This document shows positions 8,713 through 16,153 of a DNA stretch of 18,222 nt, piece by piece. The stretch lies in sequence record NC_036595.1; one strand, given 5' to 3'. The number at the start of each line of letters is the position of its first letter. Position 1 is the stretch's first letter. The translations under genes were made by a program, and so were the position numbers. The notes beneath the pieces were generated by a model that made no database searches, had not been told where the DNA came from, and saw only the letters and a list, made by a program, of their open reading frames with translations.

Positions 8713-8796
8713 TTTAAGTGAAAGTCGGAGAGTAAGCTCAGTCCGCTCCCTCAAGGCACATCCCATGAACAATTTTTAAAGTAAGAAATAAATAGG

Positions 8797-8825
8797 GTTA
8801 TGTGGTCATAAAGTTATGTGGTCAT
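8797..8825. repeat. 13-bp perfect direct repeat GTTATGTGGTCAT x2
   Basis: Copies at 8797-8809 and 8813-8825, next to an AT-rich tract at 8771-8796. Confidence 0.85.
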
Positions 8826-8901
8826 GTGGGCGTGAGAGTATGCTCGGCGAGAACATGCCTCAAACTCCCACTCCCTATACTTCTTCTAACTCAAATAATG
8901 A

Positions 8902-8945
8902 CTCTGTTAACACTTTGTTAACACTGTTAACAATTGTTAACAGAG
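8902..8945. repeat. Four phased palindromic TGTTAACA repeats bounded by an 11-bp inverted repeat; candidate origin or operator array
   Basis: TGTTAACA at 8905, 8916, 8925, 8935; CTCTGTTAACA (8902-8912) is the reverse complement of TGTTAACAGAG (8935-8945). Confidence 0.85.
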
Positions 8946-9360: not shown

Positions 9361-9400
9361 AAAGGTTTATTAGGACTGGGGGCCTATATGGATATATGGC
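9361..9400 (+). promoter_or_regulatory. BRE/TATA promoter sharing the core of the repeated promoter
   Basis: AAAGGTTTATTA is identical to 7723-7734; ATGGC lies 30 nt after the TTTATTA start, as RTGGC does in copies 1-3. Confidence 0.65.
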
Positions 9401-9654
9401 TCTGTGAGCGTGGGAGCATGGGCAGGATTCCCGTGAGGCCTGTACTCGAGGAGTCTTTTTGGAAGTGGGCTAAGAAAAAAGCCATCGACATAGATGCGGA
9501 CGCAAGCGACATAGTGGAGCTAGGTCTAGCCATGGTTTATGTGGTGACTGAGAGGCTTAGGCGGGTGCCGCCTGAGCTCGGCAGAGAGTTGAGGACGTTG
9601 GACCCGAAGTACGCGGAGCTCGTTAGCAAGCTCATAACAGAGGCCAGGGGGTGA
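9388..9654 (+). CDS. Probable ribbon-helix-helix DNA-binding protein (possible start 9418)
   Basis: RIPVRPVLEESFWKWAKKKAIDIDADASDIVELGL fits an RHH strand-helix-helix. Confidence 0.6.
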   Translation: MDIWLCERGSMGRIPVRPVLEESFWKWAKKKAIDIDADASDIVELGLAMVYVVTERLRRVPPELGRELRTLDPKYAELVSKLITEARG

Positions 9655-9995
9655 TTAGGGTGGCCGGTGCTAGGATGGTTGCAGACGCCATAGTGCTCCT
9701 AGACCACTATATAGAGGTTCTTCTAGAGATTGAGAAGAGGCTCTGCCCAGGGACGGACGCCTGCTTCTCCCGCTACTCATCCATCCTTGCTATGGATAGA
9801 GAGAAGCGGACTGAGGCCGCCGAGAAAATTAGAGAGGCTAGAAACATCCTAGAAGAGGCCAAGCTAGCCCTGGCGAGGGAGCTCAAGCGCGAGGTTCTAA
9901 GAGAGCTGGCCGAGGAGAGGGCCCAGCAGTTAGTAGAGGCCGAGAGGCAGAGGCTGGACGGCGACGGGAAGCTTAAGCTAGCAGTAGAGGGGTGA
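9651..9995 (+). CDS. Helical/coiled-coil hypothetical protein
   Basis: E/K/R/L/A-rich heptads; GTGA-coupled. Confidence 0.7.
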   Translation: MIRVAGARMVADAIVLLDHYIEVLLEIEKRLCPGTDACFSRYSSILAMDREKRTEAAEKIREARNILEEAKLALARELKREVLRELAEERAQQLVEAERQRLDGDGKLKLAVEG

Positions 9996-10002
9996 GGTAG
10001 CG

Positions 10003-10347
10003 ATGTGTAGGCCTAGGGTTGATCTCGACGAGTTCACGCTCGACAGCATGCGCGGCATGACGGTGCTTCTCGACAGGTCGAAGACTAAGGCCATTGTCCA
10101 CGAGTCGGATGTGTACGACCATGTGAACGAGAAGGGATACGAGATGAGGTCGAGGTTTAAGATGCGGGTTGTTGATGGAAGACGGCTGATATGCCTCGAC
10201 GACGACAGGACGTGCTTCGACATGGCAACTCTCGACAAGTTCTGCGTCAACTGGCTTGAAGTCTACACAAAGCCAGAGCAGCCGCTGCTTGCTAGGATAG
10301 TGGGCACGGACTGGTTCCTGATGCTGGCACCCGAGATCATGTCATAG
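10003..10347 (+). CDS. Hypothetical protein, possibly a single PCNA/sliding-clamp-like domain
   Basis: C-terminus FDMATLDKF..LEVYTKPEQPLLARIVGTDWFLMLAPE resembles the PCNA C-terminal pattern (Y/F-x-L-x-Y-L...V-x-L...D-x-P-L-x-L...F-x-L-A-P). Confidence 0.45.
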   Translation: MCRPRVDLDEFTLDSMRGMTVLLDRSKTKAIVHESDVYDHVNEKGYEMRSRFKMRVVDGRRLICLDDDRTCFDMATLDKFCVNWLEVYTKPEQPLLARIVGTDWFLMLAPEIMS

Positions 10348-10354
10348 GTGGTGG

Positions 10355-10780
10355 GTGGTGAGGCGCGGGATAAGCCCAGTAATAGCGACCGTAATAATAG
10401 TCGCCGTTACTATTGCGGTCAGCCTGGCGGTTGCTGTATGGCTCTTTAACCTATTTGACGTGTTCAGTGAGTACTCGGTCGTCAAGATCACCACTGCATA
10501 TTTCGTGTCAACCACGGACGAGAACGGTAACACGAGATGGCACCTGATATTGATGGTCAAGAATGAGGGCAGCCAGGCGGAGACGTTGACATCGGTCCGC
10601 GTGAAAGGCGTGGTTATAGACGTGCCGGACACCGCAGAGGTGCTCCAGCCAGGCGAAACGAAATTGATACAGATACCGATGCCAGATGGCCTCACGTTCC
10701 AGCCCGGGGAGCGGGTGGCGATAGAGCTGTACACAGCCTCAGGCCTGGTGGTGCCGTTCGTCGCCGAGGTGAGGGGGTGA
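10355..10780 (+). CDS. Archaeal type IV pilin with class III signal peptide
   Basis: N-terminus (M/V)RRG|ISPVIATVIIVAVTIAVSLAVAVWL is a canonical PibD-processed pilin/archaellin N-terminal helix, followed by a beta-sandwich-like domain (..LQPGETK..FQPGERV.I.L.TASG). Confidence 0.88.
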   Translation: MVRRGISPVIATVIIVAVTIAVSLAVAVWLFNLFDVFSEYSVVKITTAYFVSTTDENGNTRWHLILMVKNEGSQAETLTSVRVKGVVIDVPDTAEVLQPGETKLIQIPMPDGLTFQPGERVAIELYTASGLVVPFVAEVRG

Positions 10781-11352
10781 CCGTGTTGGGCCTCGACGCG
10801 CGGGACCTCAAACAGAGGTACAAAAACAAATGGTCTAGGTCGAATGCTAGGGAGCAGTTCGTGCTCGCCGCCTTGCAGGCGTATCTGCCGCCTGGCTTCG
10901 AGGCCCGCTTGACGGGGCTCGGCGCTGGCTCAAGCGAGTACATCGAACACAACTACAAGAGCCTAGAGGAAGCCTTCGACATAACAGTGTATTATATGGA
11001 TAGGCCTGTGGCGTTCCTCGACGTCACGGGCGTTGTCAGCGTGTTGAACGCTAGGCGGGCGGCCTGCAACGGCAGGTGTGTGGGGAGCTGGAAGCTCAGG
11101 AAGGCGGAGAAGCACCGCGTGCTGGGCAGGGTGTGGTTCGCGTGGGTCAACGACCAGACGGCGTCGATATATTTCCTGCCTGCCGCCTGGCTGGCGCAGC
11201 ACGCCGAGGGCCCCCACGTCTCCAAATGCAGGCTGTACAGCGACGAGAGAATAGTCTACTGCGTCAGGCCGGGCTACTGGAAGAAGCTCTACAACTTCCT
11301 CAGGTGGCTCGCAGCATACGGCCCCGTAGCCGACTACCTAACACCCTTCTAG
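10777..11352 (+). CDS. Putative PD-(D/E)XK-fold nuclease
   Basis: Helix with E (NAREQFV), then FDITVYY..PVAFLDVTG (D...D-x-T variant) and a downstream Lys (SWKL). Confidence 0.5.
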   Translation: MTVLGLDARDLKQRYKNKWSRSNAREQFVLAALQAYLPPGFEARLTGLGAGSSEYIEHNYKSLEEAFDITVYYMDRPVAFLDVTGVVSVLNARRAACNGRCVGSWKLRKAEKHRVLGRVWFAWVNDQTASIYFLPAAWLAQHAEGPHVSKCRLYSDERIVYCVRPGYWKKLYNFLRWLAAYGPVADYLTPF

Positions 11353-11353
11353 G

Positions 11354-11575
11354 GTGGTTATTATGGCCGCGATGGACATCGAGGTTATCTTAACCCCGCC
11401 TAGAGGGCGGGGGATGCTGATATTCTCGTTCAAGGCGCCCCCACAGCTTATCCAGGAGTTCGACAAGGCAGCCCGCGCCGCGGGCGTGACCAGGAGCACC
11501 GCGATACGCCTGCTGATACGCCACGCCCTGGAGAACCCCGAGCTCCTGAAGAAGCTGGCCGAGAGGGGTGAGTAG
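11354..11575 (+). CDS. CopG-family ribbon-helix-helix transcriptional regulator (start may be a downstream ATG)
   Basis: LIFSFKAPPQLIQEFDKAARAAGVTRSTAIRLLIRHAL is a canonical RHH (G-V-T-R-S-x-x-I-R). Confidence 0.85.
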   Translation: MVIMAAMDIEVILTPPRGRGMLIFSFKAPPQLIQEFDKAARAAGVTRSTAIRLLIRHALENPELLKKLAERGE

Positions 11576-11577
11576 CG

Positions 11578-11949
11578 GTGGCCAGGGGGGTTGAGTATCT
11601 CCGTTATATAACGCCTATGACTCTCGACGAAGAAAGCGCCTACCAGTTGCTGTTTGCTAGGGCCATGAACCATTTAAACGGCAGGCGGTTCTTGGGGGTC
11701 AAACGGTTAGTCAGGGCCAAGCGCAGATGCGAGGGCGTGCAGTCCGTAATGGAGCCATACAGGTATTTTAGCCGTTGCGACAGGCAGGCCGAGATAGCTC
11801 TCCTGTTCCAGTACAATTACAAGTACTATGCGGTGTACCTCTGCAGGGAGTGCTATGTGAAGACGGTCGAGGCCGTGAAGAAATACCTACAGGATAGAGT
11901 GTCGAGCATAGCCGAGTCGCTCCTGGAAATGGCGGGCGACGAGGGGTGA
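11578..11949 (+). CDS. Hypothetical protein, putative Zn-binding
   Basis: Four Cys including LCRECY plus upstream RC residues; operon context. Confidence 0.6.
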   Translation: MARGVEYLRYITPMTLDEESAYQLLFARAMNHLNGRRFLGVKRLVRAKRRCEGVQSVMEPYRYFSRCDRQAEIALLFQYNYKYYAVYLCRECYVKTVEAVKKYLQDRVSSIAESLLEMAGDEG

Positions 11950-11958
11950 TTATGGCCC

Positions 11959-12285
11959 GTGCCGGGGGTGGTAATTACGCCGCTAACGGCTAGGGAGTTC
12001 CTGCTAGGGCTACTCTGGCTGGGCCCTAGAACGCCCGAGGAAATCCGGCTCGCAGCCGAGGAGTACAGTAAACATAATGTCGTGCTGTACACGCCCCAGC
12101 GGATAAACAAGGCTATCGAGCACTTCCAGGCCGCAGGCCTGGCCAGGCTTGAGAACGGCAGGCTGGTGCTGGAGAGGGAGAGGCTGCACCCCAGCCTCAG
12201 GCAGGCGGCCAAGGTGCTGGCGCAGGCCATAGACGGGGGTGATGGAGATGGCCGAGGTCGTGATAGCGTACAGCCCCCACACTAG
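11959..12285 (+). CDS. Winged helix-turn-helix DNA-binding protein (PadR/ArsR-like)
   Basis: LLGLLWLGPRTPEEI...TPQRINKAIEHFQAAGLARLENGRLVL matches helix-turn-recognition helix, GL and beta wing. Confidence 0.75.
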   Translation: MPGVVITPLTAREFLLGLLWLGPRTPEEIRLAAEEYSKHNVVLYTPQRINKAIEHFQAAGLARLENGRLVLERERLHPSLRQAAKVLAQAIDGGDGDGRGRDSVQPPH

Positions 12286-12496
12286 GCGTAGGGCCGAGGC
12301 CCTCGCCTGGTTCTTCCAGAGGCTAGGCCTCAGGGTGGTGCTCAGAGAGGATGGCGGTGAGGGGGTCAGCGTCAAGTACGGTGGTGTCTGGTGGCTGGAC
12401 CCAGACGAGGCGATACGCCACATAGTCTCGCGGGGCTGGGGTAATTTCAATCCACGTTTAAAAACATCGGTTAATGGGGGTGGACGTCCTTTATGA
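12239..12496 (+). CDS. Small hypothetical protein, possible Cys-less glutaredoxin-like fold (likely start ATG 12248)
   Basis: beta-alpha-beta pattern (VVIAYSP..AEALAWFFQRLGLRVVLRE..VSVKYGG..DPDEAI); fold call is weak. Confidence 0.55.
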   Translation: MMEMAEVVIAYSPHTRRRAEALAWFFQRLGLRVVLREDGGEGVSVKYGGVWWLDPDEAIRHIVSRGWGNFNPRLKTSVNGGGRPL

Positions 12497-13512
12497 CCCG
12501 GGTTTCCCCAGCACGGGCTGGGGCAGGCGCCGTGGTGTTCTACAGGGTCAAGCGGGTCAAGGGCAGGTACTACCTTGTCAAGGAGTGGTGGGACCCGGGG
12601 TTGAAGAAGAAGATCACCAAGTCGATAGGCCCCTGTGAATGGCTAGAGGGCCTCAGCGAAGAATACAGGGAGAGGACGCGGGGTACTAGGGGCCCCGCCC
12701 CTAGAGTGGTGCCGCGGCCGGGATTTGAACCCGGGTCACGGGCTCGAAAGGCCCGCAGTAGGCGGGGCGCCCAGCCTACCGTTTCCCCAGGCAACGGGTC
12801 CACCGTGGAGCCCTACTACAGGCGGCTATGGGAAACCTGGTGCCTGGAGAGGGGCACAAGCCCCGAGACCTGTGCCAGGTACTCGGGCTACCTGCAAAAG
12901 CCCCTGGACCCAGGCAACCGCTGGAGCGCCAAGGCCTGGAAGCTCTACTACAAGTGGCGGTGCGAGCTGGGGGACCAGACGGCCTGCGAGGACTACAAGA
13001 GGGTGAAGGTGCCGCAGGCCGGGGCGGACAAGCGGGTGCCAAGCCTAGAGGCAATACTAGACAGTATAGAGAGGGCGGGCCCCTACCGCATAGTCTACAT
13101 TATCCTGCTAGAGTCTGGGCTCAGGCTGGTAGAGGCGGTGAAGCTTATCCGCGAGTACGATAGGCTGGAGTGCACCAGGCTGGACGGCTACACCCGCTGC
13201 CTGCTGGGCTACACGCGGGGGAAGAAGAGGGCGCTCTGGGGCTACCATATCACGCCTGTAGAGCCTATGGAAGACCTGACGGACAGAAGGGTGACAAGCT
13301 ACGCAGAGAAGTACAGGCTAACCCCGCCAAAGTACATTCGAAAGTTCGTGGCCACTAAGATGGCCGAGCTAGGCGTTCCCTTCGAGGTTATAGACTTCAT
13401 ACAGGGCAGGACGCCTAGAAGCGTGTTGCTCCAGCACTACGCCCAGCTACTGGGCGTGGCGGACAGGGAATACGCCAAGTATGCTAGGTGGCTCAGGGGG
13501 TGGATGGGGTGA
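12493..13512 (+). CDS. int: SSV-type tyrosine recombinase (integrase), intact form
   Basis: N-terminal YRVKRVKGRYYLVK domain; antisense-tRNA peptide VPRPGFEPGSRARKAR; catalytic motifs ESGLRLVEA (R), KKR, KYIRKF (K-x-x-R), FIQGR and QHYA (Y). Confidence 0.95.
   Translation: MTRVSPARAGAGAVVFYRVKRVKGRYYLVKEWWDPGLKKKITKSIGPCEWLEGLSEEYRERTRGTRGPAPRVVPRPGFEPGSRARKARSRRGAQPTVSPGNGSTVEPYYRRLWETWCLERGTSPETCARYSGYLQKPLDPGNRWSAKAWKLYYKWRCELGDQTACEDYKRVKVPQAGADKRVPSLEAILDSIERAGPYRIVYIILLESGLRLVEAVKLIREYDRLECTRLDGYTRCLLGYTRGKKRALWGYHITPVEPMEDLTDRRVTSYAEKYRLTPPKYIRKFVATKMAELGVPFEVIDFIQGRTPRSVLLQHYAQLLGVADREYAKYARWLRGWMG
12707..12757 (-). other. attP core: 3' half of tRNA-Glu(TTC) including CCA, embedded in the integrase gene (not a complete tRNA)
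   Basis: Reverse complement TGCGGGCCTTTCGAGCCCGTGACCCGGGTTCAAATCCCGGCCGCGGCACCA gives anticodon stem CGGGC/GCCCG, loop CT-TTC-GA, T-arm CCGGG-TTCAAAT-CCCGG, 3' acceptor strand and CCA. No D-arm or 5' acceptor strand is present. Confidence 0.93.
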
Positions 13513-13703
13513 GGCTTGAGGTCCTGGTGCTGCAAAATCCTGACCATAAAACACTGCGTAGGCTGCTCAGGCGGCATAACGGCAGGATACTGGCTGTAGC
13601 CCTTGTCGTCGAGGTCGAGAGCAAAAAACAGGTTTCAGCTCTTGCGAGGCACTATAGGCTTAGGCCTCTCCCCGTCCCCGCCACCCTCTTTATCGAGCAC
13701 TAG
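13509..13703 (+). CDS. Small basic hypothetical protein (64 aa)
   Basis: Start reassigned to GTG 13509 (GTGA overlap with the integrase stop, GGGGG upstream); converges on the ATPase gene. Confidence 0.55.
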   Translation: MRLEVLVLQNPDHKTLRRLLRRHNGRILAVALVVEVESKKQVSALARHYRLRPLPVPATLFIEH

Positions 13704-13709
13704 CGCCTG

Positions 13710-14648
13710 CTAGCTGTTCCACCTTATTTTTATTAGCGGCTTATGTGTTCCATTCTCCCTGAGGTAGAAGTCTATCCCGTTCCCTCTCCTCACAGTCTTT
13801 ATACCTTTAACGTATGTCTCATACTGTATTGTAGGCTTCCCAGTTCCATCGTTCCATTGTTCCTCTCCAGCCCCGCCAGCATGCTCCACCCTAGCCTGCT
13901 GGGGTAGAGCCTCGAGGCTCCGCCTAGCCTCTGGCTCTGCCCTCACTAGCGATCGGTGGCGTTTAAGCACAGCAACAGCCCTGTGCACGGTCTGCCACGT
14001 GACCTCAGGGTCATTACTAGTCCACAACTTCATAGATAAGTCGTGTAGTGCCATAAGACCTGCACCCCCGACTAGGGGGCCTAGCAACCTGAAGTCGGCT
14101 GGCTCGTCTGGGTAGCTCTTGAAGAACTTGAGCACCGCCATACGCCTAAACGTGATATCCACTAGGTGGTAGACCTGCGAGGCGTGGACTGCGAGTAGGA
14201 ATCCGTTGAATCCTAGGGCCTTGAGCCTATGCCTTATCATAATGTAAGCCTGCGACTCGCTAACGTTCTCCCTGGACATTGCCCGCCTTCCATGCCCGCC
14301 CTTGGTGGCGGGGGCGTCGTCGTTGAATATGTAGAGGTACATACACCTATCTAGGTCTAGGCTTGTAGCGGCCTCTAGCAACTGCTGTATCCCGGCCTCT
14401 TTACCGTAAACATAGCATATCGAGTAGTCGTCCACGCCCTGGCCTAGGAGCGCCTGAACGGCCTCTCCCAGCTTAGCCTCGATAAAGGTGGTCTTGCCAC
14501 TACCCATCTCCCCCACTATTAGGGCGCTCCTCATATGCAGAGGAGCCCTCTCCACAAACCCAGGCGGCGGGGCCATGTAAGCTAGGATACGGCCCCTAAC
14601 CTTAGTCTCGGGGGTCTCCTGTGTCACTACCTCTTTCATTGCTACCAC
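13710..14648 (-). CDS. A32-like (FtsK/HerA superfamily) P-loop ATPase; probable genome-packaging/assembly ATPase
   Basis: Walker A GEMGSGKTT, Walker B LYIFNDD, then IRH....LLAVHASQVYHLVDITFRR, matching the RH...hhhsQ...hR signature of A32-type ATPases. Confidence 0.85.
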   Translation of the reverse strand: MVAMKEVVTQETPETKVRGRILAYMAPPPGFVERAPLHMRSALIVGEMGSGKTTFIEAKLGEAVQALLGQGVDDYSICYVYGKEAGIQQLLEAATSLDLDRCMYLYIFNDDAPATKGGHGRRAMSRENVSESQAYIMIRHRLKALGFNGFLLAVHASQVYHLVDITFRRMAVLKFFKSYPDEPADFRLLGPLVGGAGLMALHDLSMKLWTSNDPEVTWQTVHRAVAVLKRHRSLVRAEPEARRSLEALPQQARVEHAGGAGEEQWNDGTGKPTIQYETYVKGIKTVRRGNGIDFYLRENGTHKPLIKIRWNS

Positions 14649-15376: not shown

Positions 15377-16153
15377 CTAGAATCCTATGATATCGTCTAG
15401 GTGCTCCAGCTCATACCTGGCTACATCGTCTAGCTCCCTAGCGACCATCTTCTCCCACTCGCTGTCCTCATACATCCTACTGATGTACTTCCACCTCTCC
15501 AAGTCTTCCTTGGCTATCTCCTCTAGCGTCTTACCCAGGGCTTCCCTAACTAGCCCCTTGGCATAGTGGTAGCCTAGAGACCAGTCCACTAGCTCTTTCC
15601 AGTCGTATTGATACGGGTCTATACCCTTCTCCTTAGCTCTGTCGTGTATTGCCTTCGCTAGTGCTAGCGCCATTATATATGTCCAGACCCTATCCTTTCC
15701 CCTCTTGTAACGCTTGGGTATCCATCTCCAGATGTCCTCTGCTAGGCTCCTAACAGCGGGGCTCCTGGCCCAGGTCTGCCTAGCCCTCTTCAGGGCCTTA
15801 GCCAGGGCCTTGGCTGTTATGGCTTTTACAGCCTTAGACTCGACCTTCTTACCGGCTCCCAGCTTCTTGGTTACCTTCTTCGCCTGGCTCTTGCTGGCCT
15901 TACTAACCTCTCGCTTTAGCCTTCTAACAACCTTTATCACGTCGTGGGTGTGTCTCCAGGGGCCCCTGCCTACCTTCTTCCCCCTGCGCCTGTCCAGGTG
16001 TGGGGTGTGCTTCGATATGTGGCTCCTAGAGCGGGCGTAGTAATGGCCCGGGCCAGTCCACGCCTTCTCGCACGCCCTCTTACTGTACCCCCTCTCCTCG
16101 CACCACTTGAGCAGTTGTTTCTTCGTCTTGAAGAAGTAGAGCTTGGTTACCAC
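15377..16153 (-). CDS. Highly basic K/R-rich protein; candidate nucleoprotein
   Basis: Very K/R/A-rich first ~140 aa (histone H1-like KKVTKKLGAGKKVESKAVKA), acidic helical C-terminus; directly downstream of the VP2-like gene. Confidence 0.7.
   Translation of the reverse strand: MVTKLYFFKTKKQLLKWCEERGYSKRACEKAWTGPGHYYARSRSHISKHTPHLDRRRGKKVGRGPWRHTHDVIKVVRRLKREVSKASKSQAKKVTKKLGAGKKVESKAVKAITAKALAKALKRARQTWARSPAVRSLAEDIWRWIPKRYKRGKDRVWTYIMALALAKAIHDRAKEKGIDPYQYDWKELVDWSLGYHYAKGLVREALGKTLEEIAKEDLERWKYISRMYEDSEWEKMVARELDDVARYELEHLDDIIGF

Follow-up and report, generated by a model that had tools for sequence, protein, structure and literature searches.

Aeropyrum globular virus 1 carries a type IV pilin gene without pilus assembly genes

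The window analyzed here, a stretch of DNA of 18,222 bases, was found to be identical in sequence to the circular genome of Aeropyrum globular virus 1 (AGV1; LC208019 / NC_036595), which it covers in full. One of its genes, ORF20_141 (10355–10780, plus strand), encodes a protein that was confirmed as a genuine archaeal type IV pilin by its class III signal, its homology over the full length and the lollipop fold of its structural model. Since AGV1 has a complete pilin gene without pilus-building machinery, the machinery of the host is probably borrowed. The explanation that we favor, and consider moderately likely, is that ORF20_141 is a functional pilin of the PilA family (Aap-like), which is kept under selection and uses the host PibD and a host ATPase/TadC pair, as in the haloarchaeal provirus SNJ2.

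AGV1 is a virus of Aeropyrum pernix and has been described in one preprint (10.1101/2021.04.21.440749). According to this preprint, the virions are spherical and about 60 nm in size, and the genome, whose gene content was called 'mostly unique', comprises 34 ORFs, 13 of them with transmembrane motifs. [quoted passage not shown] The sole major virion protein was identified as ORF1_309 by N-terminal sequencing; SDS-PAGE of purified virions resulted in a single major band (ORF1), and surface structures were not seen on the virions. The preprint mentions neither pili nor ORF20_141 in the virions (10.1101/2021.04.21.440749).

The sequence-only reading, from which this analysis started, had taken the pilin gene as undescribed, which turned out to be incorrect. 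Its product is annotated in GenBank as 'flagellin-like protein' (BBC20945.1), and the preprint names it 'pillin (ORF 20_141)', gives Thermogladius calderae as the organism of its best hit and adds no further comment (10.1101/2021.04.21.440749). The gene is therefore known but uninterpreted. Beyond this bare mention, the literature search gave no account of a pilin encoded by a Thermoproteota virus, and of the texts searched only the paper on SNJ2 uses 'viral pilin' or variants of this phrase. Several other product names in the GenBank record look shifted or spurious. The name 'Putative trypsin-like protein' is attached to 2708–2920, yet the Trypsin_2 domain is located in 1930–2718, and for 'Acyl-coA dehydrogenase', 'GMP synthase' and 'Glutamyl-tRNAGlu reductase' (regions 11959–12496 and 15377–16153) Pfam support above the cut-off was absent.

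The pre-pilin gene was delimited consistently by the ORF list, GenBank, the TIGR02537 match, its homologues and an AlphaFold2 (AF2) model. It starts with GTG and encodes 141 amino acids with the N-terminus MVRRG/ISPVIATVIIVAVTIAVSLAVAVWLF (the slash marks the predicted cleavage position), which is a short basic leader with a Gly at position −1 followed by an uncharged hydrophobic stretch. This class III signal leader (10355–10369) was read from the sequence, and PibD would be expected to cleave it after Gly5. A lysine or arginine at position −2 and a glycine at position −1 are common to all six pilins found on mobile elements in this study (RRG/ISP, RRG/VSS or RKG/ISP). The N-terminal hydrophobic segment comprises residues 6–38 (10370–10468; DSSP helix 8–38) according to the AF2 helix and the alignment, and is predicted to act as membrane anchor before assembly and as filament core afterwards. 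Residues 39–141 (10469–10777) form a globular beta-sandwich domain of seven strands, as determined from AF2, DSSP, Foldseek and the alignments. In an alignment of 30 homologues the core helix was nearly invariant and the head variable, as would be anticipated for a pilin that assembles and not for a protein that is just anchored in the membrane; S7, A11, V13, I15, A17, A25 and W29 were conserved in all sequences.

For the assignment to a protein family, ORF20_141 was compared with several model collections. The NCBIfam model TIGR02537 (archaellin/type IV pilin N-terminal domain) matched with 30.2 bits at a cut-off of 20, and Pfam Pilin_N (PF07790) with 24.3 bits (E 5.8e-5), 0.9 bit under its cut-off of 25.2. 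A family for the AGV1 pilin was absent from PHROGs. A total of 365 proteins matched ORF20_141 at E ≤ 1e-3; the best 120 of these align for the most part with over 90% of the length of the AGV1 protein, have about 29–46% identity and are pilins of Desulfurococcales, Thermofilaceae, Methanomethylicia and their relatives. The AlphaFold2 model, based on the alignment of 30 homologues, reached a mean pLDDT of 89.4 and consists of a helix (8–38) and a seven-strand beta-sandwich. All top Foldseek matches of this model are filament subunits, namely those of Sulfolobus acidocaldarius Aap (8q30; E 2.3e-7), Pyrobaculum arsenaticum (6w8u; E 7.1e-7), S. solfataricus (6w8x) and S. islandicus (6nav). A sequence profile of the pilin searched against the PDB matched 8q30 (E 8.1e-14) and 8fk7 (E 8.1e-12) over nearly the whole length, and SNJ2 PilA2 (8gi2) with an E-value of 2e-4. 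The exact ORF, the TIGR02537 score above the cut-off and the AF2 fold are consistent with the canonical class III signal and the pilin domain that the sequence-only reading had proposed for 10355–10780.

Two other assignments were rejected. The NCBIfam UpsA model (NF046073) aligns with residues 3–127 of ORF20_141 (E 3.6e-10), but its 40.1 bits are below the required 130, so that the protein is not an equivalog of UpsA of the Sulfolobales, and AGV1 is without the Ups operon context. An archaellin was dismissed on the basis of the Pfam archaellin domain, which was absent at E ≤ 0.1, and of the length of 141 aa compared to about 200 aa or more in archaellins; archaellum subunits also rank below pili in the Foldseek search (5tfy on rank 7, 9eq7 on rank 31). 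The pilins of the Sulfolobales Aap type and of P. arsenaticum (8q30, 6w8x, 6nav, 6w8u) are similar to the AGV1 protein in their length of about 130–145 aa and in the lollipop fold. They differ in being chromosomal and share 20–22% identity with it, and their filaments have been proven by cryo-EM, whereas for the AGV1 protein a filament is deduced from these similarities.

Genes for pilus assembly were searched among the other AGV1 ORFs. Peptidase_A24 (PF01478), T2SSE (PF00437) and T2SSF (PF00482) domains were not found in Pfam scans of 30 AGV1 ORFs; the four ORFs that were left out encode 61–80 aa and are too small for a peptidase, T2SSE or T2SSF protein. The P-loop ATPase ORF28 (13710–14639, minus strand) gave only weak matches of the AAA/FtsH type and was rejected as secretion ATPase. 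That the pilin is present without a viral prepilin peptidase, secretion ATPase or TadC-like protein, as had been noted from the sequence, therefore holds for all 30 scanned ORFs. A crude FlaFind-like pattern, which results in 0.01 matches per shuffled genome, picked ORF1 and ORF34 of AGV1 in addition to the pilin. ORF1 was rejected as class III protein due to its Sec-type AxA signal, and ORF34 (RRG/LLAIPML) due to the glycine, which is not kept in its homologues. ORF20_141 is the sole supported class III protein in AGV1.

The pilin gene is part of a tightly packed array on the plus strand (9388–13703; the genes overlap or are at most 11 nt apart), which contains small regulators, the pilin, a nuclease and an RHH gene and ends with the integrase. 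A TTTATTA box is located at about 9366, upstream of the ATG at 9388. Between the stop codon of ORF19 (TAG, 10345–10347) and the pilin start, a Shine-Dalgarno-like run, GGTGGTGG, was identified (10347–10354, plus strand), and an A/T-rich box was not found in the sequence directly upstream of the pilin start. The presence of this run without an A/T-rich box suggests that the pilin gene is internal to an operon, and the array 9388–13703 is probably co-transcribed. The GTG start codon of the following gene (10777–11352, plus strand) overlaps the pilin stop codon (GTGA). This gene, which had been read as a nuclease beside the pilin, indeed matches the PD-(D/E)XK-type viral/archaeal nucleases (VirArc_Nuclease, PF12187, 36.3 bits; phrog_9634, E 3.7e-67).

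Further features were observed in and around this array. An unannotated ORF of 88 aa (9388–9654, plus strand) has a homologue at 2612–2905 of the AGV1-like locus L048 described below (38% identity, E 2e-9) and is probably a real gene that was missed in the annotation of LC208019. Four copies of the palindrome-containing sequence TGTTAACA, for which 0.17 are expected per genome, were found at 8905–8942 with distances of 9–11 nt. A TTTTTAAA box (about 8773) and the direct repeat TTATGTGGTCAT, present twice, precede them, and ORF16 follows; judged by its sequence, the region 8770–8945 resembles a promoter that contains operators of an RHH/HTH regulator. A tRNA-like stretch on the minus strand (12710–12792) inside the integrase gene is the presumed attachment site; it reached 30.8 bits with the Rfam tRNA model (cut-off 29), and no tRNA was called by ARAGORN. 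The sequence 12709–12767 shares 91–97% identity with the integrase/att regions of Sulfolobus spindle-shaped viruses.

For the identification of related pilins, one genome per species was scanned, resulting in 72 pilin loci, none of which is from Aeropyrum. The closest relative of ORF20_141 (L002) has 43% identity and is also 141 aa long; the 4.4-kb contig that encodes it is made up of small HTH and RHH genes and has the appearance of a further mobile element. When all AGV1 proteins were compared with the 72 loci, three loci were found to be AGV1-like elements. In an Acidilobaceae MAG (L016/L079; L079 = JALWEI010000029.1:72695-93444), a provirus colinear with AGV1 could be identified. Its proteins share 76% identity with the C-terminal part of the AGV1 integrase, 34% with the capsid protein, 47% with the protease, 43% with the pilin and 51% with the nuclease, and homologues of ORF3, ORF7, ORF11, ORF27, ORF29/30 and ORF34 are also present. 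Locus L048 contains homologues of ORF16, of the ORF at 9388–9654, of the pilin and of the nuclease as well as an integrase fragment, and L024, a close relative of L079, likewise carries pilin and nuclease. In L016/L079, L048 and L024, the pilin is followed by the nuclease at a distance of 0.3–0.7 kb.

A different arrangement was found on a 2.7-kb contig (L077), which encodes homologues of ORF34, ORF3 and the capsid protein; here the pilin gene follows the capsid gene after 36 nt and is itself followed by the ORF3 homologue after 6 nt. In AGV1 the pilin lies outside the structural block, since the capsid gene is ORF1 (1–930). The earlier description of the gene as being outside the structural operons is thus correct for AGV1, but it does not apply as a rule for the lineage, as the L077 pilin directly follows the capsid gene. 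A search with a capsid profile gave eight other capsid homologues, that of L077 itself and seven on seven further AGV1-like contigs, and in all of these seven the capsid gene is without a pilin as neighbor. Of about ten capsid-anchored contigs in total, eight show the gene after the capsid, which is a pilin only in L077. The contigs found via the capsid (L116–L124) end before the pilin region of AGV1. As a separate observation, the capsid protein of L077 (984–2090) is fused to a homologue of the small AGV1 membrane protein ORF2 (936–1121), and the two probably act together in the envelope.

The pilin recurs in at least four distinct AGV1-like genomes including AGV1, and its position is not fixed. 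It is kept in every AGV1-like genome in which the region is visible (AGV1, L079/L016, L024, L048 and L077), a conservation that carries an ascertainment bias because the pilin-bearing relatives were found via a pilin search. Between the pilins of L079 and L024 (78% identity) dN/dS was 0.22, as low as or lower than that of neighboring genes, which indicates that the gene is under purifying selection in AGV1-like viruses.

The AGV1-like lineage (L079, L116, L118, L120–L124, L077, L048 and L024) was found in MAGs of hydrothermal Acidilobaceae-type archaea and in metagenomes, with a common order of the genes for capsid, ORF34, protease, ORF7, ATPase and others. Scans of IMG/VR with profiles of the pilin, ORF34 and the capsid protein returned AGV1 itself only. 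In the IMG/VR contigs, 55 stretches fit the core patterns [AG]ISPVIAT or VIIVAVTI, and a full-length check was passed by AGV1 only; pilin-like proteins that differ in the head may be present on other viral contigs. One metagenome scan, anchored on the viral protease, resulted in generic trypsin-like proteases with at most 41% identity and in no relatives of AGV1.

Phylogenetic trees were built from 183 and 37 pilins, among them the six mobile-element copies. These copies were found in three well-supported pairs (AGV1 with L002, L016 with L024, and L048 with L077). Four of the six are placed inside a supported cellular clade (95/84) of Acidilobaceae, Pyrodictiaceae and unclassified vent Desulfurococcales. 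The AGV1 and L002 pilins are on a long branch, the position of which is not fixed in the tree. The tree needs three changes for the six copies; a single origin of all six was neither supported nor rejected by the AU test (p = 0.105).

The nearest cellular relatives are pilins of Acidilobaceae, Desulfurococcales and Pyrodictiaceae MAGs (L031, L053, L062, L076 and others) with about 30–49% identity to the viral copies. In this clade, the cellular pilin gene is typically located directly downstream of the genes for a T2SSE ATPase and a T2SSF protein, which was confirmed with Pfam for L031, L053 and L062. The pilins of these operons and four viral copies have the helix-end motif GW(L/I)MGLWGxFG..E(S/Q)L in common. 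Unlike the viral pilins, those of the MAG operons directly follow their own ATPase and TadC genes, are mostly longer with a variable loop, and none of them is encoded by a mobile element. The six pilins of mobile elements are all compact (126–141 aa compared to a median of 155) and without the variable loop of most cellular homologues. The AGV1 and L002 pilins have in addition lost G32, G35 and E41, which are nearly invariant in the cellular homologues, and polymerization could be altered or lost through these changes. Glycosylation sequons and Ser/Thr content showed no clear difference between viral and cellular pilins. Apart from the pilins, the pilus ATPase of L031 (4422–7430, Acidilobaceae MAG, 1002 aa) was found to be split by an intein with a LAGLIDADG domain, and an intein is also present in several metagenomic homologues of about 750–880 aa.

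For A. pernix K1 and A. camini, a prepilin peptidase (arCOG02298 in K1), an archaellum locus, an ATPase-TadC-pilin locus (arCOG03872) and a stand-alone pilin (arCOG03871) are listed (Makarova 2016, Tables S3/S4). In K1 the pilins arCOG03871 and arCOG03872 are located at 659992–660504 and 465795–466223, respectively. A second ATPase-TadC pair without an adjacent pilin is given in full for A. camini (Table S4) and is supported for K1 by the count in Table S3, so that K1 has two non-archaellum ATPase/TadC pairs of clade 4 (Makarova 2016, Tables S3/S4). In the native host, whose draft genome was located with the accession range from the preprint (10.1101/2021.04.21.440749), contig BDMD01000071.1 contains the gene of a T2SSE ATPase (580 aa) followed by that of a T2SSF protein (618 aa). 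The pair is flanked by an OsmC gene and GatE, and a pilin-like ORF was not found within 10 kb on either side of it.

The TadC protein of this pair shares 44–47% identity with the TadC proteins of the pilin-linked loci L053, L031, L044, L076, L060 and L062, compared to 26–36% with those of all other pilin loci. The ATPase follows the same pattern (53–55% and 40–51%, respectively). The host thus owns the type of machine that is usual for such pilins, and the machines of the MAG operons are orthologous to it, without a pilin beside its own copy. Peptidase, ATPase and platform are present in the host, and the viral pilin may be compatible with them; PilA-family pilins have been argued to be compatible with most ATPase-TadC pairs (Makarova 2016). 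The compatibility with the host pilins and machines is assumed here, because an Aeropyrum pilin was not recovered as a relative in the genome scan.

According to the favored explanation, a pre-pilin with a leader of five residues would be made and inserted into the cell membrane, and a host class III signal peptidase of the PibD/FlaK family would trim it after Gly5. A host T2SSE ATPase/TadC platform would polymerize the pilin, resulting in virus-specified or mixed pili on the carrier cells. The likeliest machine would be the host pair of 580 and 618 aa, which is without an adjacent pilin and orthologous to the machines linked to the closest cellular pilins. The outcome would be a surface conversion of the carrier cells, which may adhere or aggregate in new ways, present a different set of virus receptors, or do both.

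The same processing and assembly steps are part of a second explanation, receptor replacement, which differs only in the selected benefit: the viral pilin would enter host pili beside the host pilins or instead of them, pilus-binding competitor viruses or AGV1 itself would then fail to adsorb, and superinfection exclusion would be selected. Type IV pili are described as receptors of crenarchaeal viruses (SSV9/SIRV; PMC7217056), and so are those of P. arsenaticum. Prophages of Pseudomonas express a minor pilin similar to FimU, which enters the pilus and blocks tip-binding phages (Sztanko et al., PMC12952977). This P-FimU of the F10-like phages of P. aeruginosa is a model for exclusion, in that a virus-encoded component replaces that of the host in a host-built pilus; it is unlike the AGV1 pilin a bacterial minor tip pilin without sequence relation, for which the defence has been demonstrated. 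The possibility has also been raised for archaeal viral pilins by the SNJ2 authors (PMC12426801), and the surface of the pilus would be altered by the mobile-element pilins, all six of which lack the variable surface loop of the cellular homologues. In the sole archaeal case that has been tested, however, the viral pili created a receptor for another virus and removed none (PMC12426801), and the AGV1 pilin sequence contains no specific sign of a role as cap or in jamming. Receptor replacement is possible, but rather unlikely. The sequence-only reading had suggested that the pilin enters the host pili and masks or jams the receptor there. Entry is plausible, given a real pilin, the assembly genes of the host and the precedent of SNJ2 (PMC12426801), whereas specific masking or jamming was not supported, since the protein resembles major filament-forming pilins and not a cap, tip or minor pilin.

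With still lower probability, the processed pilin could be a minor virion component, held by its hydrophobic helix in the membrane that gives rise to the enveloped particle and involved, for example, in attachment or in the organization of the envelope instead of in cell pili. This role is kept alive by L077, where the pilin gene directly follows the capsid gene inside the structural block, and it is in line with the retention of the pilin in every AGV1-like genome with a visible region and with the many other membrane-anchored proteins of AGV1. It is at odds with the single major band (ORF1) in SDS-PAGE and the virions without surface structures (10.1101/2021.04.21.440749). Copies with only about 40% identity also share a near-exact core helix and PibD site, which a simple anchor would not need. 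L077 is moreover the only one of the eight capsid contigs showing the next gene in which this gene is a pilin, and in AGV1, L079, L024 and L048 the pilin is found with regulatory and replication genes.

A more specific proposal, which we regard as speculative and about as improbable as a virion role, is that AGV1-like viruses carry the pilin as a hallmark gene for their own transmission. It would supply the missing subunit to a host machine without a pilin at its locus, and the resulting virus-specified pili would gather cells or decorate the particle, by which a virus in an unstable carrier state of low copy number would keep re-infecting neighboring cells. A functionless passenger, i.e. a host pilin gene captured by chance and unused by the virus, would agree with the repeated capture of host pilins by archaeal viruses (SNJ2-like proviruses, PMC12426801) and with the variable position of the gene, but is very improbable given the intact ORF and signal peptide in six divergent copies, the low dN/dS, the confident fold prediction and a composition without anomaly (GC 0.53–0.54 compared to 0.558 for the genome).

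The favored explanation, a functional pilin that is assembled by the host, corresponds to what has been described for SNJ2, a provirus of the Pleolipoviridae in the haloarchaeon Natrinema sp. J7. SNJ2 encodes two type IV pilins, PilA1 and PilA2, and neither PilB nor PilC (Xiang et al., 2025, PMC12426801). The dominant pili of the cell consist of these pilins, which are assembled by PilB/PilC pairs of the host. SNJ2 itself can do without them; a second virus uses them as its receptor, and biofilm formation and motility are promoted by them (PMC12426801). Pilins were found in 16 of 51 SNJ2-like proviruses (PMC12426801).

SNJ2 and AGV1 are similar in that pilins with a class III signal are carried by a temperate virus without genes for the assembly ATPase, the platform and the peptidase. 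The SNJ2 pilins make use of the host machinery, have homologues in related proviruses and are related to pilins of the host lineage. The two systems differ in the host, which is a haloarchaeon (Euryarchaeota) for SNJ2 and a hyperthermophilic member of the Thermoproteota for AGV1, and in the tandem pair of pilin genes of SNJ2 compared to the single gene of AGV1. The sequence relation between their pilins is only remote (profile E 2e-4 to 8gi2), and the SNJ2 pilins are close to those of their own host, whereas for AGV1 no Aeropyrum relative was among the 72 genome loci. Filaments, receptor role and biofilm effect have been demonstrated for SNJ2, whereas for the AGV1 pilin they would be putative.

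A virus-encoded pilin that borrows host machinery is already established for SNJ2 (PMC12426801). AGV1 is therefore a new example, not a new kind of system. What is new here is the recurrence of the pilin in the AGV1-like lineage, the purifying selection on it and the matching host machine without a linked pilin. The analysis also flags that viruses and proviruses similar to AGV1 form a small, previously unrecognized lineage in hydrothermal archaea of the Acidilobaceae type. If the favored explanation is true, virus-encoded pili would be extended from haloarchaea to the hyperthermophilic Thermoproteota, which suggests that borrowing of the host pilus machine may be recurrent in temperate, enveloped archaeal viruses. 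The viral pilin, matched to a host ATPase-TadC pair without a linked pilin, would provide a route to what viral pili do, be it adhesion, cell-cell contact, a change of receptors or exclusion.
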